A stretch of 64,000 nucleotides of DNA, from the sequence record NC_021529.2. One strand, given 5' to 3'. The notes under the pieces were generated by a model that was not told where the DNA came from, did no database searches, and saw only the letters and a list, made by a program, of their open reading frames with translations. The position numbers and the translations under genes were made by a program. Positions 7,221 through 61,648 of the stretch are shown in pieces. The number at the start of each line of letters is the position of its first letter. The first letter of the stretch is position 1.

Positions 7221-7447
7221 TTACAGCAAAAGAAGCACGAGCACGCAGGAAGTCCCTTCCTGCTGCTGTTCAAAGCGCACTAGATGACTTGAATTTAGCG
7301 ATTCAAGTCGCTTCTTCTAGTAAGAATAGTGTAATGTACAAAACTGACAAACTGACATCGAATGAACGAGACTTGTTGAGAAATAAACTCATTAGTCTTG
7401 GTTATGATGCATTTATCGTCGGTGAGAAACTAGAGGTTGTGTGGTGA
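7217..7447 (+). CDS. Hypothetical protein, member of local paralogue family
   Basis: MITAKEARAR...LISLGYDAFIVGEKLEVVW similar to 8335-8595. Confidence 0.7.
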   Translation: MITAKEARARRKSLPAAVQSALDDLNLAIQVASSSKNSVMYKTDKLTSNERDLLRNKLISLGYDAFIVGEKLEVVW

Positions 7448-7662
7448 TGAGCAATTTTGTAAGAACAACAGAAGACATGTGTCGCGACTTTCGCGCTGAG
7501 TTAAATCAAGCTGCGTGTTCAAGTTCTGACTACTATCTCGTTCAGTTATATGCTGCATTTTTAACATTTGGATTTGCATGTCAAATCGCGATATTCATTG
7601 CATTTTATGTTGCTTTTTGCATACCAACAACTGCATTGGCTCGCTTGTTTGGGATTAAATAA
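7441..7662 (+). CDS. Hypothetical membrane protein
   Basis: Hydrophobic C-terminal half. Confidence 0.55.
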   Translation: MVMSNFVRTTEDMCRDFRAELNQAACSSSDYYLVQLYAAFLTFGFACQIAIFIAFYVAFCIPTTALARLFGIK

Positions 7663-13094: not shown

Positions 13095-13115
13095 AGGGGC
13101 GAAAGCCCCTTTTTT
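13095..13115 (+). terminator. Intrinsic terminator after gene 30
   Basis: AGGGGC-GAAA-GCCCCT plus T run. Confidence 0.85.
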
Positions 13116-13117
13116 CG

Positions 13118-13125
13118 TATAAATA
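13118..13125 (+). promoter_or_regulatory. T4-type late promoter
   Basis: Exact TATAAATA, ATG 24 bp downstream. Confidence 0.8.
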
Positions 13126-13148: not shown

Positions 13149-14036
13149 ATGATTATTTTCGAACATCAAGACTCGCTTGTTGAAGCTTTTACGACACCTG
13201 CTCCGTATCGTTGGGCAGATGATAATAATATTGTGTTCAGAGTCGGGTCAACGAATTACCAGGCTAATATCAACTCATACGAGAACAGAAACACGCAGAG
13301 TCGAAATATAGACGTGTCATTTCAATGGCAGACTGAAAGCGGTAGATGGACGTTCACATTGAAAAAAAGTGATAATCCGAAAGATGCACTTACAGTGATC
13401 AGTACAATTCTGGCTGCTACATTCGAAAAAGAAGCAAAAGAGAAGCCAGATACGATTTCGTTTAGTGCGTTCACCGATGACAATGATAGAGACGCACAGA
13501 AGCGTTTCAAACTTTACAAACGAATTGCTGAGCGTTATGCAAAAGAGCGTAATTACACACTACAAGTTCATGATCGTTCTTTTCTTCTAACTAATAACGC
13601 GAAACCAAGTCAGATGAGACGATTCCCGAACGACGGCGTTATTGAAGAAGACGGTCTTGTTTATGCTGAATTCCCGCGTGTCAATGCGTTCACATGGGCT
13701 AAAATGTTCTGGCTTGACAATGCAGGTGATTACATCGACTTGTCTCTACCACATGGTCGTGTTAAGGTGACTCGAACATCAGAAGATGTAGTCACTGTCG
13801 ATGGGCGCAACGCAGAAGGCAAAATCGATAACTTAGATAGCTCTTATGTATGGCTGAGTATGCTTGGTGAGATTAAAGTTCGCACACGAACCGGTCGAGA
13901 ATTCACATTGTCTGAAAGGGGTGTTATACTTGACGCTGGTGACATGATTTTGTGTGACGATAAGACAATATATTACTTGTCAGATGAAGAAATGTTCGCT
14001 GATATTTGGGGTTACGATATTATCGAAATCGTATAA
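13149..14036 (+). CDS. Putative virion internal (ejected) protein, paralogue of 49992-50828
   Basis: Late promoter; N-terminus ...SLVE/AF; shares KDALTV, FSAF.D, KR..LYKR.AER motifs with 49992 ORF. Confidence 0.6.
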   Translation: MIIFEHQDSLVEAFTTPAPYRWADDNNIVFRVGSTNYQANINSYENRNTQSRNIDVSFQWQTESGRWTFTLKKSDNPKDALTVISTILAATFEKEAKEKPDTISFSAFTDDNDRDAQKRFKLYKRIAERYAKERNYTLQVHDRSFLLTNNAKPSQMRRFPNDGVIEEDGLVYAEFPRVNAFTWAKMFWLDNAGDYIDLSLPHGRVKVTRTSEDVVTVDGRNAEGKIDNLDSSYVWLSMLGEIKVRTRTGREFTLSERGVILDAGDMILCDDKTIYYLSDEEMFADIWGYDIIEIV

Positions 14037-14067: not shown

Positions 14068-15726
14068 TCATGGTGTTAGAGGACTACGCTCTTTAACCAA
14101 TCGTTCTTCGTCAACCGTTGGTTCGGCTGCACGCATGAAGTCAGCGACTTCAGTTAGTTCATGAATTCGTTCTTGTCGTTTACGTTCAGAAAGAACACTG
14201 AATTTTTCATGCTTGTTCTTTTTCTTCAGTCTGATGACTGCATCGAATTCAGAAAGTTGAATCAGCTCAGCTTCAAACAATGTATTGCGATTGATGATGA
14301 ATTCGCAATCACCTTTCTTCCCATGCTTACCTGTTGCAAGAATCGGCAACCCTTCAGCTTCGATTACAAACACAACGTTCAATTTCTTATCAGTTTCAAG
14401 CATATCTAGCATTGTTGATTTGCTATTTTTATCGATTGCATTCACGATAGTTTTCGATGATGATTCAACGAAGTTACATGCAACAATAGGGTTTGTTGAT
14501 GATGAGATAAACGCAGTAGACGCAAATACCCCAGATTCAAGAATCGCACCAACTCGCTTGCTGCTCATTTCAGCACCACGGTACAATGTCATTGCACTAG
14601 CAGATTTACCCGCCTCAGCAAACGCATAATCGAGACGCTTAATGATGTCTGATGCTTTATCAGATTCAATGCCGTGTACCAATGCTTCATTCACTTTCCA
14701 CGCATATCGCGACGCAGAATAGCGAGAAATTGCAGCTTGCGTAAGCGACCCAAGCCCAGCGAATGAATCTTCTTGCATCAATAGCATAGAAAGACGCTCA
14801 TATTGCGCTTCAAGAGCACGAGAACGCGATTCAAGTAAGCAGTTGAATACATCACTAGGGTTTTTAGATTCGTGCATGTACGAGTTGATAGAGTTAGCAA
14901 GAACTGGTAGCTCAAGATTCATGTCAATCAATCCTTGTGCAGCCATTGCAATTTTCGACTCAGATTCAGTTAATGCAATTTCAGTTAAACGCGCATTGTG
15001 TGATGTGCTGTGATGCGATTCAAGTTGCGGCATTTGAAGAACTGCGTTCGGAACACGAGCAGCAGGATTGTCGCCAACCCACGTATCAAGAACAACGTCG
15101 TCGTAATCATCATATTCAGCACCAGCAGTAACGATGATTGTTTTCTTGCTTGAAATGTCAGTTTCTTGCGACATTTTAGCAGCAATCATGTTTACCGTTT
15201 CTTCAGACGCTTCGAATAGCTTGTCAGCGTTGTATCCTGGTTTTGTGATGACGAAGTAGCTGAAATCATCAACCATTTCAGATGTACCATCGTTAACGAT
15301 TTTAGTCGTCTCGCAGCCATAGCGTAGCTTTTTGAATAGCGTTTTTACGCGCATGTCAAACATTTTACCACTGCCAAGCTTTTGAATTCGCATCGATACG
15401 ACGTTTGCACGACGACTAAGCATGAAGTCGTAAACAAGCGTTACGATAGTTTCAATTAGTTTTTGCTGATCGCCCATTTCACGAATAGTCAACCCGCCTT
15501 TCTTTCCGCGCATAGCAGAAACAGTGCAGAACCAGCTACGTTTGCCACGATTGCCGATGTCTGATTTGGTTTTAGTAGTGAACGAAACAACGATGTCCCT
15601 AGCTTCGCCTTTCATATCGATCACAAAGAATTTGTTTTCTTTGGTCGAGCGAGCCGGATAGTAGTCGTATGTCGCGCTCATGTTTTCTGTTAATTGTTGA
15701 TATCCAATCATTTTGTATAGACTCAC
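14068..15726 (-). CDS. alt: Alt-like NAD:protein ADP-ribosyltransferase
   Basis: TLYRG, FISSS and DCEFIINRN match the R-S-E ART motifs; next to gene 30 as in T4; start could be 15711. Confidence 0.85.
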   Translation of the reverse strand: MSLYKMIGYQQLTENMSATYDYYPARSTKENKFFVIDMKGEARDIVVSFTTKTKSDIGNRGKRSWFCTVSAMRGKKGGLTIREMGDQQKLIETIVTLVYDFMLSRRANVVSMRIQKLGSGKMFDMRVKTLFKKLRYGCETTKIVNDGTSEMVDDFSYFVITKPGYNADKLFEASEETVNMIAAKMSQETDISSKKTIIVTAGAEYDDYDDVVLDTWVGDNPAARVPNAVLQMPQLESHHSTSHNARLTEIALTESESKIAMAAQGLIDMNLELPVLANSINSYMHESKNPSDVFNCLLESRSRALEAQYERLSMLLMQEDSFAGLGSLTQAAISRYSASRYAWKVNEALVHGIESDKASDIIKRLDYAFAEAGKSASAMTLYRGAEMSSKRVGAILESGVFASTAFISSSTNPIVACNFVESSSKTIVNAIDKNSKSTMLDMLETDKKLNVVFVIEAEGLPILATGKHGKKGDCEFIINRNTLFEAELIQLSEFDAVIRLKKKNKHEKFSVLSERKRQERIHELTEVADFMRAAEPTVDEERLVKERSPLTP

Positions 15727-16498: not shown

Positions 16499-17314
16499 AT
16501 GACTATCACTAAAGCAGAAATGACAGCAATCGCAAACGACATCATGAGCGGCAACAATCTTCTAAAGCGCGATCTTAAAGCTGAAGGTTGGTTCTTCGAA
16601 TTCGGTTCAATGGCTGCTCTAGGCGACTGTCATTACGGCAAGAAAGTTCTACGTCTTTCTGACAAGTACTTGAACGCACGTACTAAAGCTGAGCAAATCA
16701 ACACTATCACGCATGAAATGGCACACGCTATTGCATACACTGATTACAGCGAACGTGGTCACGGTGCAATCTGGAAACGTGTTCATCGTCAACTAGGTGG
16801 TACTGCTGAGCGTACTTCTCGCGTATCAAATCTAGAAGCTGTTGACAAGAAATACGTAGTTTTCTTTGAAAACGACAAAGGCGAACTAGAAGTTATCCAC
16901 AAAATGGATCGTCTGACTGCTAAATTCCGCGGTTCTCGTATTACTAGTCTTTACGTTCCAAGTCGTAAAGAAGAGACTCAAGGCAAACTACGTTGTGTTT
17001 CTTCAGTTACTTTCAACGCAATGAAAGCAAATCTTGAAGAATCTCGCGCTGAAGCGAAAACAGTTGAAGTTAAGCCAGTTGTTAAACCAACTCAAAAGAC
17101 TGAAACTAAGAAAGTTGAAAAGAAAGTATCAGCGCGTGGTCAAGCTGCTCGTGATGCAATCGCTAAAATCGTAACAACTGAGATTTACAAAGATTCGACT
17201 GTTACATTTTACAAGCGTCGTCCAACTGATAGCATTTTCTTCATCAAGATTGAAACTGCGACTGACACAATCGAACAGCGTCTAGACGTGTTCAAAAAGA
17301 AACACAGCTTGTAA
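16499..17314 (+). CDS. SprT-like zinc metalloprotease domain protein
   Basis: LGDCHY, TITHEMAHA, HGAIWK...LGG. Confidence 0.85.
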   Translation: MTITKAEMTAIANDIMSGNNLLKRDLKAEGWFFEFGSMAALGDCHYGKKVLRLSDKYLNARTKAEQINTITHEMAHAIAYTDYSERGHGAIWKRVHRQLGGTAERTSRVSNLEAVDKKYVVFFENDKGELEVIHKMDRLTAKFRGSRITSLYVPSRKEETQGKLRCVSSVTFNAMKANLEESRAEAKTVEVKPVVKPTQKTETKKVEKKVSARGQAARDAIAKIVTTEIYKDSTVTFYKRRPTDSIFFIKIETATDTIEQRLDVFKKKHSL

Positions 17315-18668: not shown

Positions 18669-19184
18669 ATGAAAAATCATTATGTAGATAATAAAGCTCT
18701 ATACGCATCGTTGTGCGAATGGAAAGAAGAAATGAAAACGGCACCTGAAGATGTTCATGTGCCTGTACCGAATTTTGTAGCTGAGAGTATTTTGAAAATC
18801 AGCGAAAATCTATCGAGACGTTACAACTTTAGCGGTTACACAGCAACGTGGAAAGAAGAAATGATTGGTGACGCAATCGAGCACTGTTTGCGTTACATCA
18901 AAAACTTTGACACTGAAAAATACAAAAATCCACACGCTTATATAACTCGAATCTGCTTTAACGCATTTGTTCAGCGTATCAAGAAAGAACGTCAAGACAC
19001 TGCGATTAAATATAAAGTATTCTTATGCGATTCGTCTAACTATTCAATGGACGGTGAAGAAGCTGATTATGAGTTTCTTCAACAGATGCTGGAACGTGTC
19101 AACTCTTACGAAACGAGTAAGAAAGACAAGGCTCAACCAGACGAAAAGAACGAACCACTGAACTTACAAAAATTTTACAATTAA
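18669..19184 (+). CDS. 55: Late transcription sigma factor
   Basis: HYVDNKAL, NFSGYT..WKEEMIGDAIE, NPHAYIT.ICFNAFVQRIKKE. Confidence 0.96.
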   Translation: MKNHYVDNKALYASLCEWKEEMKTAPEDVHVPVPNFVAESILKISENLSRRYNFSGYTATWKEEMIGDAIEHCLRYIKNFDTEKYKNPHAYITRICFNAFVQRIKKERQDTAIKYKVFLCDSSNYSMDGEEADYEFLQQMLERVNSYETSKKDKAQPDEKNEPLNLQKFYN

Positions 19185-30922: not shown

Positions 30923-31426
30923 TTATCTCTGATTGCAATTGTCAAAATGCCAACGATTCATAGCAGGCTTGCCGCCAGATTTACCGCAATGTGGACACGA
31001 TATAATATCTTTTGCAATCCCTTTAATCTTCGATGGGCCTAGTTTGCGACCTCGTTGAGTTTCAGATCTCTTGCGATTTGATTCTTCGGTCATTACTTGT
31101 TTGGCTCTTGCTGCACGAATTTTCGCTCTTGTTTCGTCGCTGCATCGATCAGAACCACCGTGTCCGCCTGTTCGTAGGTTGTAACACATTTCATCATTAA
31201 CAAGAATTTCATCAACTATACGCTCTTCAGCTTCGTTGCATACATTTTCATCGTCGCATATGAAGAGTATTTCTTTGATGAATTTATCTTTACCATACTT
31301 TTTGACGGCACGCTTTATTAATATACCTGAGCCAAGATATGAGTCATGTATATTTTCAGTTTTATGCTTGCCGATGTAGAATTTATTGTTTATTGTGTTC
31401 GTAATTTTATATATTATGTATTTCAT
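30923..31426 (-). mobile_element. Free-standing GIY-YIG homing endonuclease (Seg-like) with NUMOD-like repeats
   Basis: IIYKITN...FYIGKH, YLGSG, YNL, SDETRAKI and TEESNRKRS repeats, C-terminal CPHC; antisense insertion before gene 43. Confidence 0.9.
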
Positions 31427-31450: not shown

Positions 31451-34003
31451 ATGAGTATTTATACATCAATTGAGAGAATTGGGTCTAATTTGTGTGAGCG
31501 TTATTTAGATGATGACGGCACTGAGAAAATGCGTAAAATTCCGTATACACCGACGTTGTTCATTCATTGTAATGAAGAAACTGGTTACAAAGACATCTAC
31601 GGTCGTAACTGTCGCCCTAAGTTGTTTGACACGATGGGCGAAGCAAGCAAATACATCAAAGAAACTAAGCAGCATCATGAAGTACTCGGAATGGATGACT
31701 TCGTGGTTACTTACATTTCTGACGTTTACAAAGAACGTAAATTTGATATTGGCAAAATTCGAATTGCGAATATCGATATTGAGACTCCATCTGTGGAGTT
31801 CCCAGAAGCAGCACATGCGCCTGTGCCAATTACATCAATCGGTCACTATGACAACATCGACGATAAGTTCTACGTTTATGGTATCCCGTCAAATACTGAA
31901 TGGTCGCGTGAAAGTAGCATTGTTAAGCCAGAGCTTCTAGAAAAGACTGTTTACATTCGTTGTGCGACTGAAAAAGAGCTGCTGATCAAGTATCTTCAAT
32001 TCTGGCGCGAGAAAACCCCAGCAATCGTAACAGGCTGGAACATTGAATCGTTCGATATGCCGTACATCGTTAACAGATACAAGAATCTGTTTGGTGAGAA
32101 AGTGATGAACAGCTTGTCACCGTGGGGTAAAGTTCAAGTATCGACTACAGTCAACGACTACGGTCAAGAAATGTGCAAGGTCAACATTCTCGGTGTATCT
32201 GAACTCGATTATCTTCAGCTTTACAAAAAGTTCACGTATGTGACTCGTCCGTCATATCGATTAGACTACATTGGCGAAGTTGAGCTTGGTGAGAAAAAAG
32301 TAGAATTCGAACAAGCGAACTACTTGGATTTCTACAACGAAGATTATCAGAACTTCATTGACTACCAGATTCAAGACGTTAACTTGGTTAAGCGATTAGA
32401 TGATAAACTTCAGCTAATGCTTTTGACTGTCTCTCTTGGCTATTACGCTGGTATCAACTATCAAACGGTACTTGGTACAATCAAGCCGTGGGATGCAATC
32501 ATCTTCAACAGCTTGAAAGCTCAGAAGAAAGTAGTTCCGATGATGACATCACATGAGGGTGGTCGATTCATGGGTGCGTTTGTTAAAGCGCCTCAAGTTG
32601 GATATCATCGTGGCATTGGTTCTTTCGACTTGACATCACTGTACCCGTCGATCATTCGTGAATGCAACATTTCACCAGAAACAATCGTTGGTCAGCTTGA
32701 TTACGAAGGCACGCTTGAAGATCGTATCGACAAGATTGTTGACATGGCAATTTCGTTCCCTGCTGATGAGATTTCAAACAGCGCGAACGGTATGCAATAT
32801 CGCAAAGATATTCGCGGTGTAATCCCGATTGAAATCGAGAAGGTGTTCTTCCAGCGTAAAGAAAACAAAAATATCGCGTCTGATTTCAAGAAGAAATCTC
32901 TTGAGATTCGTCATCATATGGATGAGCACGGTGAAACTCCTGAACTTCTAGCTGAATACGAAGAAGCGAAGCATCAAGCTAAGATCTACGACGTGCAACA
33001 GATGGCAAGAAAAATACTTATCAACTCACTCTATGGTGCGTTAGGCAACGAATTTTTCAGATTTTACGATCTGCGTAACGCTGAAGCAGTAACAGCATAC
33101 GGTCAGCTTGCAATCAAATGGGTAGCGCGTGACGTTAACATCTGGTTGAACAAAGTTTGTAAGACAACTGACAAAGACTACGTGATTTACGGTGATACCG
33201 ACTCAATCTACGTTAACTTTGATCCGCTGCTTGAACTGACTGGTATTAACAAGCTTGAAGGTGATGACTACACAGATAAGTTTGCTAAAGTTTGTGAGAC
33301 AGTTGAAACGAAAGTTATCAACCCGTCGTACGAAGCACTTCACAAGTACATGAACACGTACGAGCGTCAAATGTACATGGATCGCGAAGTTCTAGCGCGT
33401 ACTGGCTTCTTTATCGCGAAAAAACGTTATGCGCTTGATGTGCAAGATAACGAAGGTATTCGTGAGCCTAAGCTGAAGATCATGGGTATTGAAACTCAGC
33501 GTAGTTCAACACCGCCGCTATGTCAGAAAGGTCTTAAAGAATCGATTCGCTTGATTCTGCAAGAAGGCGAAGACAAGCTGCAAGAATACGTGAAAGGCTA
33601 CGAGAAGCAGTTCAAGTCAGCGCCGTATCAAGAGATTTCGTTCGTGTCTAGTGCAAACAACATGAACAAATACTCTGATGATAAAGGCAACCCTGGTAAA
33701 GGATGTCCTGGTCACGTGAAAGGTGCGTTGTACTACAACAAGCTTGCTGAAGAGCATGGGTTTGACAAAATCAACGAAGGTGACAAAATCGCTGTTGTGT
33801 TCTTGACTCGTAACAAACACGGTATTGATCGTATCGCGTACCCATCTGGTGGTAAACTGCCAGAAGCGATTAGCTACTTGATTGATCACGTTGACTACAA
33901 TCGTCTGTACGAAGACAAGTTCATCAAACCGTTGTCTGCAATTTCTGAGGCAATCAAGTTTGACTATAAGAAAACAATCACGTTGGAGAGTTTCTTTGGC
34001 TAA
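31451..34003 (+). CDS. 43: Family B DNA polymerase
   Basis: DIET exonuclease motif, [29 protein letters not shown]; 850 aa without intein. Confidence 0.98.
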
Positions 34004-43096: not shown

Positions 43097-43714
43097 ATGG
43101 ATATTGAACGCGAACTGCACGAACTTAATGTGCATAATAACAGAGTTTACACTCGTGTAGTTGATGAGGTGATGAAGCCAAACATCATTGAAATCTACAA
43201 GCATATGCGTGATGAAATCGGGTACAATCAAGAAATTTGGTACGGTGACATGGATGTGTATGTGTCAATCGAAGAAGCATATGAAAAGCGTGAACGTTCG
43301 TTTGATGCGTTGATCATCAATAACGTTGTGTCATGTGCTGATCAGCCGATCACTGTTGCTCTTATTGAGAAAAACACGTACTCAATCCCTCTTTGCAAAT
43401 GCGTTGCGTCATTTGGCGAGAAGAAAGAACAAGGTCATGTATGGAATGATCATCGAGATTGGGTTCTTGAAGGGCTAGATACGTTGCGTGACCACAATTG
43501 GAAATTTGGGTACGAAGATCTACGAGACCCGAATTTGGTTTTCGAGCGTGCTTGCTTATGGGAAAAAGTAATGCCTGATAAAGCATACAACGGATGGACA
43601 CCATTTTCATATGGTTGTGGGTTTAACACAAGCTATCTGTTGTATGCTGAGCGTGAAATTCGCTGGGCTATGCAATCAATCACTGAAAGAACATATCATT
43701 TACAGGGGCAATAG
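43097..43714 (+). CDS. Hypothetical protein
   Basis: ATG 43097; ends in hairpin at 43704-43723. Confidence 0.65.
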   Translation: MDIERELHELNVHNNRVYTRVVDEVMKPNIIEIYKHMRDEIGYNQEIWYGDMDVYVSIEEAYEKRERSFDALIINNVVSCADQPITVALIEKNTYSIPLCKCVASFGEKKEQGHVWNDHRDWVLEGLDTLRDHNWKFGYEDLRDPNLVFERACLWEKVMPDKAYNGWTPFSYGCGFNTSYLLYAEREIRWAMQSITERTYHLQGQ

Positions 43715-43721
43715 CCCCTTT

Positions 43722-44777
43722 TTATGGTCTGTAGATCATATGATCAGAGCCCATACGTTCCCAATCACCACTGTTCATGCGTCTTTTCATTTCATCGAAT
43801 AACGCAGGGTTAGCTCGAATATCGTTTAATGGTAGAGCAACAACACCTTCTGTTTTGTGAGCTAGTAACTCAAGTTTATCAAGCAGATCGCTTGATGTTC
43901 TACCGTCGTACTTGAATTCACTAAACCAATAACCAATCTTACTGAACTTACGATCTCTGGTGTATTTCACATCGAACCCTTTCAATGCATACAGCAAGCT
44001 ACTTTCTTTGCCATGAAACGGCTTTTTGTATTCGCTGTGTTCAGCACCAGCACGAGCAAGTAATCGTTTCTTAGCCTCTTCTGGTATATTGAACCAACCA
44101 TCGAAATTATTCTTAAATCGATTCATCCATGCTTCAGCAGTTGCAGGCGAGCCTTTAAACTGAGATTTCGTATCAGCAATTGCTTGTGCATATCGTGCGT
44201 TAATCTCATGAGAATAGTTCTGATATTCGTCGTGAGACGCTTTGTGACCGGCTTTAGCGTGTTTGACGAACTCTTTATCGATATAAGCTCTATTACGCCC
44301 TGAGTGTTGATACACGCCGTCTTCGTCGCGTGTCTCGAAGTCTTCTATATCACCAGAACGCCAGTTATCGTATGCATGTTGCAGTTCGTGCAATGCAGTA
44401 CTGTACATTTGTTCTTTCTTGACTCTGAACTTTGCCATAATCTGACTAACAGCAGTTACACCAGTGATGTCAACGGTGATTTGCAAGTTACCTGCTTCAC
44501 CAGCGTCTGGGTCGTGTAAAGCACCACGCCAAACACCCATTTCAGTTGGTGATTGATTGTCGAGCTTCAGATACGCGACGATACCACGTTCTAGCAATGC
44601 ATCGAATTTGCTTTCACCAGTTTTGATGTTCAGACTCTTGGTATTGATTGCAAGATTGTTCGGATCGAATGGTCTTGTTGATAATGCATATTCCAACTGT
44701 GTTTCAAGTCGGTCAACGATAAACTTTGCTGCGTACTCTAATGCACGCTGAGATTGAACGCTTTCAAAAATAATCAT
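43722..44777 (-). CDS. Zincin-like metallopeptidase, putative late/virion protein
   Basis: TALHELQHAYD (HExxH) and downstream HEINARY; ACTAAATA on minus strand at 44810-44817. Confidence 0.75.
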   Translation of the reverse strand: MIIFESVQSQRALEYAAKFIVDRLETQLEYALSTRPFDPNNLAINTKSLNIKTGESKFDALLERGIVAYLKLDNQSPTEMGVWRGALHDPDAGEAGNLQITVDITGVTAVSQIMAKFRVKKEQMYSTALHELQHAYDNWRSGDIEDFETRDEDGVYQHSGRNRAYIDKEFVKHAKAGHKASHDEYQNYSHEINARYAQAIADTKSQFKGSPATAEAWMNRFKNNFDGWFNIPEEAKKRLLARAGAEHSEYKKPFHGKESSLLYALKGFDVKYTRDRKFSKIGYWFSEFKYDGRTSSDLLDKLELLAHKTEGVVALPLNDIRANPALFDEMKRRMNSGDWERMGSDHMIYRP

Positions 44778-44852
44778 CTTTTTTCTCTAAAACTATTGAC
44801 TGTATATCTTATTTAGTTTAATATCTCTTACATAGAAACAAGAGAGAACATT

Positions 44853-45518
44853 ATGAACGTACTGAAGTATATACACAACATATTGCACGTCGCACCGATA
44901 AAGCCTCAAGTTAGCATCAGAGCACATCAAGAAAACAGACGTGTGAGTGACGGCCCATTGACATTTCTACCATCTGAAAAGAATGCTCCCTATAGATTAT
45001 GGGTTGCAGATGCTAGTAAACTTCATCATCATATGTACAGATTTCGTCATATGTGTTCTGAATGGTATGAAACTCGCGATGACATGGCTAAGAGAATGAT
45101 CAAAGCGCGTGCTGATTACGCAGAAGCGAAAATGAAGACGTGGGAAGATTACAAATACGACGTTGAACAACCAGCGATTGAAATCATTCGTAAGATGCTT
45201 GAAAAGCCAAAACGTTTTCACATCGAGAAGTTCATCGACCCTGCTAAAGTGTTTGATGAACATAACTCAAAAACTGTTCTTGTCGATAAAGACACTAGGG
45301 TGAAATTTGTAATGAATGAAAATCCTGGCAGTTATCTTGAACGTCGTCTTCTATTACCAAGCGTATTTTCTGGTGCAGAGGCAAAATGCATTTGCGAAGC
45401 CATGCATGATGTTGTATACTCACGAATGAGTGACATCGAAGATAAGAAACGAAAAGCAGAAGAAAAGCGTCGTCAAAATCATCGTAATGAACTAATGCAA
45501 CAATACTGCGGGGAGTAA
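44853..45518 (+). CDS. Hypothetical early protein
   Basis: TTGACT-N17-TAATAT promoter and GAGAGAACATTATG leader. Confidence 0.7.
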   Translation: MNVLKYIHNILHVAPIKPQVSIRAHQENRRVSDGPLTFLPSEKNAPYRLWVADASKLHHHMYRFRHMCSEWYETRDDMAKRMIKARADYAEAKMKTWEDYKYDVEQPAIEIIRKMLEKPKRFHIEKFIDPAKVFDEHNSKTVLVDKDTRVKFVMNENPGSYLERRLLLPSVFSGAEAKCICEAMHDVVYSRMSDIEDKKRKAEEKRRQNHRNELMQQYCGE

Positions 45519-46886: not shown

Positions 46887-48242
46887 ATGAAGAAAGCTTT
46901 ACTTGCATTAGCATTAGTATGTTCTACGTCAGCGTCAGCATTTGATGGACTACCGACTAGTGGTGTAGAAACACCAAGTCCATTATCAACTGAATTCGCA
47001 TTCCCATATTTGACGAACGGTTATCACAACTCAGTTCTTCGTACATGGGTTAACACTGCCATGAAAGAAGCAGATGCAGAATTCCAAAAGACTGGTGAAA
47101 TCTCTCAAGTCGTCAACGAGAACTACATTTCGATGAACAGTTCTGGTTACAAATACTGGAATGATTCAGATGACAGAGCAACGACATCACCAGCAGCAGA
47201 TATGAAAGCGTTAAGCAATCTTGCAATGGCGCCACTGAAATGGGCTTGTACTGTATCAGGCGGCTGTTACGACAACGGCTACGAATACACACTTCGAATG
47301 AATGCTGATTCAAGCAACTTCGATGTAAACGGAACTTTGCATGTTGGGTGGGCAAACTTGCGTCGTGAAAGTTGTGCTCTTGCATACGGTGGTGTTCGAG
47401 TATGTACAACCATCGATGACATGAACTACGGTGGCGATCTAGCAGGCTTCTGGATCAAAGCAATTGATTGGATTAACGAGAAAGAAAATCTTTCAAACAT
47501 TCAAACATCGATTGATCAAGTGAAGAAAACATTTGACCGTCCGTATGTTACAGTGAACGCTACTCTAATCCCTGGTAAAGTATCTGGTGGTGATATTTCA
47601 TACTTCCATATGGCTGATCCAGAATGGTGGACTCTGTGGCAACGTCAAGTTAACTTGAACTCAGTTGCAATCGGGTACAAGCTAGGTCAAATTGAGCCGA
47701 TTCTAGCAGGCGACCATGCGGGTCTAAGACAGTCATATCTTCCGCAGGATGAGCAATGGGCTGGAAAATACGGTTCTCATCTAGCAGGTGCTTTACCGCT
47801 ATACGAATACAACCCATTGCGTGCGCTTGAAATCGTACACAGACAACGAATGCAGCTACCGTTAGGTGACTATGCACAATTCGACAACAACTATAAAGCG
47901 TGTCGAGTGAATCTGATGATGACTGGCGATGATGGTTACTTGCCGTCACCTGGGTATTACGGCGTAACAGCACTTTACGGTATAGCACCTCAATATACAC
48001 CAGTGCTTCAGCTAGCCACGTTCGCATGGTCAGCTAACACGAAGTCGCAGTCGAAGATGTACGAAATGGCAAACTATGATCACAACGCACGTGTGTTCCT
48101 ACACGAGCTAGGCCATAACTACGACTACGGTCACGATACAACACCGTCGGCAGACTCATACTGGAATGACCTGAGCGTAACAGTTCCATCATTCATCGAT
48201 GACCGTCGCAGCGACGATCAGTGCGTAAACCGCGTACTTTAA
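46887..48242 (+). CDS. Secreted protein with C-terminal HExxH metallopeptidase motif
   Basis: Sec signal MKKALLALALVCSTSASA; VFLHELGHNYDYGH; own promoter (46780-46808) and terminator (about 48250-48270). Confidence 0.75.
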   Translation: MKKALLALALVCSTSASAFDGLPTSGVETPSPLSTEFAFPYLTNGYHNSVLRTWVNTAMKEADAEFQKTGEISQVVNENYISMNSSGYKYWNDSDDRATTSPAADMKALSNLAMAPLKWACTVSGGCYDNGYEYTLRMNADSSNFDVNGTLHVGWANLRRESCALAYGGVRVCTTIDDMNYGGDLAGFWIKAIDWINEKENLSNIQTSIDQVKKTFDRPYVTVNATLIPGKVSGGDISYFHMADPEWWTLWQRQVNLNSVAIGYKLGQIEPILAGDHAGLRQSYLPQDEQWAGKYGSHLAGALPLYEYNPLRALEIVHRQRMQLPLGDYAQFDNNYKACRVNLMMTGDDGYLPSPGYYGVTALYGIAPQYTPVLQLATFAWSANTKSQSKMYEMANYDHNARVFLHELGHNYDYGHDTTPSADSYWNDLSVTVPSFIDDRRSDDQCVNRVL

Positions 48243-61339: not shown

Positions 61340-61648
61340 ATGAAAACTTTCAATGAATTTTTAGCTGAAGCTCAACACATGTATGAGCTACCACCTGGGT
61401 ATGAAGTATTCGGTCTAGTAGATGTAGATGGGAAAGAGGTTGAACTCCATTCAGACGATGTGATGCGTGACGAATTAACAAGAGTTGCAAACGCACGTAA
61501 CGTAGCTATTGCAACTGGTGGTGTTTCTTCAGAAGAAGCAGGTGTATTAATCACCAAAGGCGGTAAAGAAGTTGATTACTTCCCGCATGAAGATAAAGCA
61601 AGTGGTCCACGCTTTAAAAACTTCGTGAAACGTCACTTCAAGGTCTAA
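61340..61648 (+). CDS. Putative internal head protein
   Basis: MKTFNEFLAE/ closely matches the T4 IP capsid-targeting sequence MKTYQEFIAE. Confidence 0.7.
   Translation: MKTFNEFLAEAQHMYELPPGYEVFGLVDVDGKEVELHSDDVMRDELTRVANARNVAIATGGVSSEEAGVLITKGGKEVDYFPHEDKASGPRFKNFVKRHFKV

Follow-up and report, generated by a model that had tools for sequence, protein, structure and literature searches.

The metallopeptidase (MPTase) domain of polyvalent proteins, found for example in ArdC, P1 DdrB and N4-type virion RNA polymerase proteins, has a sheet of three strands flanked by an N-terminal helix; two catalytic helices follow, the first with the HExxH motif and the second with a glutamate, and a variable insert separates them. 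A widespread phage-type clade is marked by an aspartate at the third position past HExxH and by a histidine, also conserved, that ends the second strand (Iyer et al. 2017, PMC5512222). For phage T4, packaging of Alt and its processing by gp21 have been documented; gp21 removes propeptides of 7–65 residues, cutting after Glu, and a 10-residue sequence of IPIII has a capsid-targeting role (PMC9026906). Here we compare with these systems open reading frame (ORF) 369 (VPFG_00150) of Vibrio phage nt-1. It lies in the window analysed, which is the final 64 kb of the 247,511-bp record NC_021529.2; coordinates are those of the window unless marked 'record'. Taken as a whole, the data are best explained if ORF369 is a zincin peptidase that would be made late, packaged into the head and carried into the next host with the DNA, a reading to which we assign a probability of roughly 0.45.

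43722..44777, minus strand: ORF369 coding sequence, ATG to stop, 351 amino acids; orthologue of KVP40.0103; PHROG 15811, 'unknown function'

Full-length orthologues of ORF369 were found by tblastn in 48 phage records, all of Vibrio schizo-T4-like phages, with identities of 46–100%, and in all 48 the gene is annotated as hypothetical. The earlier note described a lone minus-strand gene in a plus-strand early region, and the orientation is as it stated: all annotated neighbours between 37 kb and 51 kb of the window lie on the plus strand, and the solitary reversed orientation and the same neighbours are kept in KVP40, K567, F86, 1.081.O and phi-ST2. The label 'early region' derives from nearby T4-type early gene names (pseT, tk.4, nrdA.1) and a sigma-70-like site rather than from expression. 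ORF369 is not an unusually conserved island, since its 80% identity between nt-1 and KVP40 is near the upper end of, but within, the 34–85% range of the neighbouring genes.

A predicted zincin-like domain in ORF369

The following features of the N-terminal part of the protein are referred to below.

44763..44777, minus strand: codons 1–5, MIIFE; E5 is invariant in 64 homologues; beginning of a superfamily-wide motif that leads into the N-terminal helix 7–33
44469..44582, minus strand: residues 66–103, three predicted beta strands of the zincin core; G81 is nearly invariant
44367..44390, minus strand: HELQHAYD (H130, E131, H134, D137), all four invariant, in the predicted helix 121–140; putative metal-binding/catalytic motif
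44190..44210, minus strand: HEINARY (residues 190–196), opening the helix 189–206; E191 is invariant and R195 nearly so

Conservation and structure modelling indicate that residues 1–256 of ORF369 very probably form a zincin-like metallopeptidase domain of the polyvalent-protein kind, with a zincin fold. The motifs HELQH (residues 130–134) and HEINAR (residues 190–195), on which the earlier note had based its assignment, are both present, and M1, I2, I3, E5, HELQH and HEINARY are invariant in 13 close homologues. In a broader alignment of 64 near-full-length stand-alone homologues, sharing 17–90% identity, the invariant positions are E5, H130, E131, H134, D137, Y185 (six residues before E191) and E191, while M1, G81, L132, S141, A194, R195 and F221 are nearly invariant. 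An alignment of 46 core domains retained H130, E131, H134, S141, E191 and R195 without exception and A135, D137, Y185, A194, F221 and G227 nearly so. His190 is not invariant among the 64 sequences and is substituted in several members of the 46-sequence alignment, whereas Glu191 never varies; Glu191 is therefore the candidate third metal ligand, in agreement with the glutamate proposed in the note. A histidine (His88) follows the second strand in 10 of the 13 close homologues and is not conserved in the 46- and 64-sequence alignments.

Two AlphaFold models were obtained, one of the full-length protein from 13 sequences, with a predicted local distance difference test (pLDDT) score of 85, and the other of residues 1–258 from 64 sequences, with a pLDDT of 93 and a predicted template modelling score of 0.90. 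Both agree on the order of elements: helix 7–33, strands 66–73, 81–85 and 96–103, helix 121–140 and helix 189–206. An insert with a hairpin (residues 147–158) is modelled between the HExxH helix and the Glu191 helix. In the models ORF369 thus resembles the polyvalent-protein MPTases in its N-terminal helix, three-stranded sheet, HExxH helix, variable insert and Glu helix, and its aspartate three residues past HExxH (D137) corresponds to that of the widespread phage-type clade. It differs from them in being a short stand-alone protein with one extra unrecognised domain, in escaping the Pfam model PF18818, and in being encoded by a T4-like myovirus with a putative T4-type late promoter upstream.

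The nearest named shapes are zincins. In the ESM Atlas the three closest structures belong to uncharacterised viral clusters (template modelling (TM) scores of 0.60–0.71), and six of the next seven named entries are zincins, namely SprT-like, M10 matrixin, reprolysin/M57, DUF885 and Mx1 proteins, with weak scores. AFDB clusters with E-values of 0.05–0.1 included SprT-like, IrrE-like and peptidase MA-like proteins, a 'metallopeptidase family' and a 'large polyvalent protein associated domain' protein. Alignments with solved chains that covered more than 100 residues of the domain were obtained for oligoendopeptidase F, PprI/IrrE, CapP, ACE2, the VgrG2b effector domain and anthrax lethal factor; the best scores in VIA-align were generic helical matches, with Z below 8. 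The minimal zincins (SprT/Wss1, IrrE/PprI/ImmA of family M78, and CapP) are similar to the ORF369 domain in size and order of elements, but they score weakly (TM below 0.5 by query, Z of 4–5), and SprT-type enzymes use a third His ligand instead of the distant Glu of ORF369. Sub-threshold Pfam matches were found among the 64 family members to M76 (27 members), M91 (11) and SprT-like (10), and searches of PDB sequences with the ORF369 protein and with the 46-sequence profile gave nothing relevant. A second copy of the peptidase domain was looked for in nt-1 and none was found.

Altogether, the invariant HExxH...E residues, the matching predicted topology, the zincins as nearest named shapes and the polyvalent-type fusions of distant relatives support the note's assignment of ORF369 to the zincins. 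The protein would bind zinc and cleave peptide bonds, Asp137, Tyr185 and Arg195 would line the pocket, and we consider peptidase activity fairly likely.

A putative late promoter and the ORF369 cassette

The octamer upstream of ORF369 was compared with octamers across the whole nt-1 genome (247,511 bp, 381 called ORFs), including those upstream of annotated structural genes.

44810..44817, minus strand: ACTAAATA, an octamer resembling T4-type (gp55) late promoters, beginning 40 nucleotides 5' of the ORF369 ATG
TATAAATA: precedes gp18, gp22, gp23, gp24, gp25 and wac
CATAAATA: precedes alt and both distal tail-fibre genes
TCTAAATA: precedes gp48, gp19, gp34, ORF234 and ORF253
ACTAAATA: precedes gp4 and ORF369

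The tabulated octamers are located 18–66 nucleotides ahead of start codons. Enrichment was calculated as the share of all copies in the genome lying 8–70 nucleotides upstream of the start of an ORF on the same strand, for which about 5% is expected by chance (381 starts × 63 nucleotides / (2 × 247,511 positions)). This share was 12 of 16 copies for TATAAATA, 7 of 12 for TCTAAATA and 4 of 8 for ACTAAATA, while none of the 21 copies of the control octamers GCTAAATA, TGTAAATA, GGTAAATA and CTTAAATA was so placed. In an alignment of the 75-bp intergenic region from seven phages, CTAAATA is invariant, although the encoded proteins are as little as 46% identical. The late sigma factor gp55 is annotated in the deposited record (window 18669..19184). 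Because of the enrichment before ORF starts, the invariance of CTAAATA and the annotated gp55, we accept NCTAAATA as a working late-promoter variant of this phage group, and ORF369 is probably transcribed late. The late promoter proposed in the earlier note thus gains support from its recurrence before gp4, from a frequency of placement above chance and from its conservation in seven phages.

Two other sites bear on the use of such octamers in nt-1. The divergent structural genes gp4 and gp48 are separated by a 70-bp intergenic region (record 109580..109650) with ACTAAATA and TCTAAATA, respectively, so that a C at the second position of the octamer appears to be tolerated in late promoters of this phage group. 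The homing-endonuclease gene segD, another lone minus-strand gene (30923..31426), has the canonical TATAAATA 37 nucleotides upstream (31456..31463, minus strand), and the late octamer would thus drive non-structural genes as well.

Both ends of ORF369 are marked by further predicted transcription signals.

44796..44824, plus strand: sigma-70-like early promoter TTGACT-17-TAATAT, facing the divergent ORF370 (which starts at 44853)
43704..43719: G+C-rich hairpin abutting the ORF369 stop codon

In nt-1 the hairpin has a T-run on the plus strand only, whereas in five relatives an A-run lies on one side of it and a T-run on the other, the arrangement expected of a two-way terminator. Across the six phages the stems differ in sequence and remain complementary, and the element therefore reads as a bidirectional terminator closing the cassette. 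Plus-strand early transcription would then halt at the 3' end of ORF369 and resume at its 5' end, and the antisense gene would depend on its own promoter. ORF369 is therefore best explained, on the basis of these predicted signals, as a self-contained cassette within a block of early-type genes, with a variant late promoter, a hairpin terminator and an interleaved early promoter.

Relatives, proposed delivery with DNA and alternative explanations

A profile search of 1.84 billion cluster representatives retrieved 406 proteins at E ≤ 0.001, most of which match only residues of about 120–260. Among 43 relatives the domain was found fused to phage lysozyme, ART-PolyVal, NUDIX, GNAT, HAD_SAK_1, 2'-5' RNA ligase/LigT/Acb1-like and DUF5661 domains. 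For example, a relative of 1,248 amino acids combines a lysozyme, an ORF369-type domain and ART-PolyVal; in another the ORF369-type domain is followed directly by GNAT and then by HAD. On a 41-kb metagenomic contig the genes are arranged in the order RtcB, an 858-amino-acid ART-PolyVal protein, a peptidase-NUDIX protein and a lysozyme protein of 637 amino acids. The distant relatives of ORF369 thus have the same partners (lysozyme, ART, GNAT, 2H, NUDIX) as the polyvalent MPTases. The statement in the earlier note that similar metallopeptidase domains occur in polyvalent proteins of phages and plasmids is borne out by these architectures and by the survey of Iyer et al. 2017 (PMC5512222). Architectures of this type provide the main argument, an indirect one, for delivery with DNA. 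The domain kind has already been described computationally, while the ORF369 clade itself is outside Pfam, unnamed in PHROGs and 'hypothetical' in every record, and a literature search found no paper, biochemical or structural study on it.

The second point of comparison is alt, which has a similar setting in nt-1.

14068..15711, minus strand, with the upstream region to 15832: alt, a lone minus-strand gene with CATAAATA 41 nucleotides before its ATG

Both alt and ORF369 are single minus-strand genes among plus-strand early-type genes, and both have a late-type octamer about 40 nucleotides upstream. The cleavage sites of gp21 follow the pattern (L/I)-x-E, and such a tripeptide occurs within the first nine residues of both proteins, the N-terminus of nt-1 Alt, MIGYQQLTE-N, including an L-x-E site. 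Alt is, and ORF369 would be, an enzyme that could sensibly act at the start of the next infection. They differ in having no sequence similarity and in their chemistry, Alt being an ADP-ribosyltransferase.

Since the family is embedded in delivered effectors and the gene forms an isolated late cassette similar to alt, head loading appears to be the most economical role. ORF369 would be made late, packaged and, in the manner of T4 Alt, enter the next host together with the DNA, where it would cleave a host protein or phage cargo delivered alongside. Judged as a step in its own right, packaging and delivery with DNA followed by cleavage of such a substrate, as in the earlier note's idea of an injected virion protease that cleaves a host defence or regulatory protein or processes other cargo, is a tentative proposal, with somewhat less than an even chance of being correct. 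If ORF369 is packaged, it adds a protease to the enzymes known to be injected by T4-like phages. The assignment to the polyvalent-type peptidases also gives a testable function to a gene that is present in every matching KVP40-like genome and is annotated only as 'hypothetical', and ORF369, being small, soluble and compact, offers a stand-alone representative of a domain family that is common in the effector proteins of phages. Since the host of nt-1 is Vibrio natriegens, a fast-growing laboratory host, the delivery and targets of such peptidases are directly testable.

A number of results weigh against this reading. As regards the domain, the choice of Glu191 as candidate third ligand is based on conservation and the order of helices. 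No Pfam model reaches the cut-off for ORF369, the sole sub-threshold match, to Sds3, being spurious; PF18818 (MPTase-PolyVal) has no match to ORF369 at E ≤ 10 and matches two of the 64 relatives at an E-value of 0.15. Foldseek found no significant match in the PDB for either ORF369 model, no named AFDB cluster matched significantly, and no named zincin reaches a TM-score of 0.5. Nor is the ORF369 protein polyvalent, having two domains and no recognised effector domain. As regards timing, structural genes in nt-1 are often on the same strand as early genes, which makes strand alone a poor guide; CTAAATA lies inside the spacer of the conserved sigma-70-like promoter, so that part of the intergenic conservation has another cause; and only DNA runs, no RNA sequencing runs, are listed for nt-1. 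As regards packaging, no virion proteome of any KVP40-like phage was found in the literature, and ORF369, which starts with MIIFESVQSQ, does not carry the internal protein (IP)-type capsid-targeting sequence MKT(F/Y)xEFxxE. Its residues I3-F4-E5 fit (L/I)-x-E, but so do tripeptides within residues 2–10 of 51 of the 381 nt-1 proteins. The MIIFE start shared with the ORF at 13149 (ORF324), to which the earlier note drew attention, is real and restricted to these two among the 381 called ORFs; identity over the first five residues is seen in three pairs of nt-1 proteins, however, so that the link is by itself within chance, and there is no further similarity.

The strongest alternative is that ORF369 is a late zincin peptidase that is absent from the virion and acts within the infected cell, where it might process a phage protein used in morphogenesis or as cargo, or, late in infection, cleave a host protein, for example in lysis or superinfection exclusion. 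We regard such an unpackaged role as rather unlikely taken singly, and nearly as likely as delivery. The evidence on fold and promoter is identical for both, the IP-type targeting sequence that ORF369 does not have is found in other nt-1 proteins, and late promoters of nt-1 also drive non-virion genes such as segD. In addition, Iyer et al. favour a role of these domains in processing their own multi-domain proteins, sometimes before packaging, as for P1 DdrB (PMC5512222). On the other hand, the genes next to ORF369 are small early-type ORFs and include neither a partner polyprotein nor an obvious substrate, the lysozyme and ART-PolyVal fusions of distant relatives are typical of delivered proteins, and the layout of the locus mirrors that of alt.

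An improbable alternative is that ORF369 is not specifically late but an early or middle host-takeover enzyme, CTAAATA being kept as part of the divergent early promoter or as a regulator site. The 17-nucleotide spacer of the opposite-strand promoter does hold the reverse complement of the late motif, and the promoter itself, with its -35 hexamer TTGACT and the TAnnAT pattern of the -10 element, is conserved among the seven phages. Moreover, ACTAAATA differs from TATAAATA at two positions, and four of its eight copies are not upstream of a gene start. Within the spacer, however, the seven bases of CTAAATA alone are invariant and the adjoining bases vary, which argues that the motif has been selected in its own right. 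A scan for sigma-70-like sites upstream of ORF369 on the minus strand found none, and the octamer shared with gp4, like the related TCTAAATA before four structural genes, gp48, gp19 and gp34 among them, speaks for late transcription.

Equally improbable is that the HExxH domain is another metal enzyme or a silent binding module rather than a peptidase: no peptidase family model scores above threshold, and one of the longest structural alignments (156–160 residues, Z of 4.5–4.6) is to the HExxH domain of ChlB, which its PDB entry calls an alpha-ketoglutarate-dependent oxygenase, so that an HExxH scaffold is not automatically a protease, but the invariant HExxH, the Glu of the next helix, the Tyr and the Asp constitute the gluzincin pattern of polyvalent-protein peptidases (PMC5512222), the named structural neighbours are mostly peptidases, and the invariance of catalytic-type residues speaks against a silent module.

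The N-terminus and head-targeting signals

MIIFE in ORF369 is the beginning of a motif, h-F-E-x-x-x-S-Q-K/R-x-L-E, which is found throughout the superfamily, marks the start of the peptidase domain and is present even where the domain is located hundreds of residues inside larger proteins. The conservation of Glu5 is therefore a property of the domain and not a T4-type signal. In BLASTP comparisons ORF369 and ORF324 had nothing in common beyond the five shared residues, and neither was similar to Alt.

T4 IPI–IPIII are encoded by late genes dispersed among early genes, as is proposed for ORF369, and have a short N-terminal peptide ending in Glu that is cut by gp21 in T4; ORF369 differs in its MIIFE start, which is not of the form MKT(Y/F)xEFxxE. 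Four small nt-1 ORFs (78–118 amino acids) do have T4-like capsid-targeting N-termini, namely MKTFNEFLAE, MKTFNQFVSE, MKTYNEFKKLNE and MKTFDEFVTE, and are candidate internal head proteins of nt-1.

61340..61648, plus strand: MKTF-type ORF starting with MKTFNEFLAE
record 7243..7596, plus strand: MKTF-type ORF
record 93812..94048, minus strand: MKTF-type ORF
record 99562..99852, minus strand: MKTF-type ORF

Each of the three that lie beyond the window is closely preceded by TATAAATA or CATAAATA. Since a recognisable form of the IP-type capsid-targeting sequence occurs elsewhere in nt-1, MIIFE was rejected as such a sequence.

The tripeptide IFE starting at residues 2–6 occurs in three nt-1 proteins (ORF369, ORF324 and ORF252) against 0.33 expected (Poisson P of about 0.005, in a test chosen post hoc), and a late-type octamer precedes each gene or, for ORF252, the gene upstream of it.

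13149..14036, plus strand: ORF324, between the DNA ligase gene gp30 and alt; MIIFE start; PHROG of unknown function
13118..13125: TATAAATA of ORF324, a canonical late promoter, with a hairpin at about 13095..13115 ahead of it
record 151654..152574, minus strand: ORF252, outside the window, starting with MTIIFERAP

In five phages the late promoter of ORF324 is invariant and preceded by the terminator hairpin, and orthologues only 38–55% identical keep M-I-(I/V)-F-E together with the invariant TATAAATA. Searches with ORF324 returned 2–4 tblastn matches per genome, which suggests paralogues. The gene before ORF252, ORF253, has TCTAAATA upstream, and a paralogue of the 'prohead protease inhibitor' is encoded in the same cluster; the N-terminus of ORF252, with IFE, is conserved in KVP40, K571 and VS2. 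The N-terminal regions of gp22 and gp23 also contain IFE. One could hypothesise that MIIFE is a second, minimal head-targeting or processing signal of KVP40-like phages, different from the IP-type sequence of T4, that the unrelated proteins ORF369, ORF324 and ORF252 share an I-F-E site cut by gp21, and that cleavage removing Glu5, a residue invariant throughout the peptidase superfamily, during prohead maturation would switch the packaged ORF369 zymogen on or off ahead of its delivery to the next cell; we consider this very doubtful.

The C-terminal domain and other putative nt-1 metallopeptidases

43725..44009, minus strand: C-terminal domain, residues 257–351, a separate alpha/beta unit of about 95 amino acids found in the close family only

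The models are best explained by a two-domain protein in which residues 257–351 form a small family-specific alpha/beta domain. Its shape is weakly GNAT-like (AcrVA5, TM 0.52 by target, Z 4.8; RimI N-terminal domain, Z 5.4; GNAT clusters of the Atlas, TM 0.44–0.49), and in some relatives a true GNAT domain occupies the equivalent position. Assignment to GNAT was nevertheless rejected on sequence grounds: hhalign against the GNAT domains of the relatives gave a probability of 0.1, Pfam GNAT models matched none of 13 members at E ≤ 1, and the loop reads Y-x-G-x-x-x-x-x-L rather than the acetyl-CoA motif RxxGxG (Q/R-x-x-G-x-G/A).

Two further genes of the window resemble metallopeptidases.

16499..17314, plus strand: ORF327, annotated as hypothetical
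46887..48242, plus strand: ORF375, 451 amino acids

ORF327 is a clear SprT-like zincin (PF10263, E-value of 1e-15; motif HEMAH) located two genes from alt and adjoining an 'inhibitor of host transcription'. The N-terminus of ORF375, MKKALLALALVCSTSASA, resembles a signal peptide, and its C-terminal part has a HELGHNYDYGHD motif that matches M12 peptidases of the reprolysin type (PF13688, E-value of 1.5e-6); ORF375 may be a phage-encoded secreted or envelope metalloprotease.

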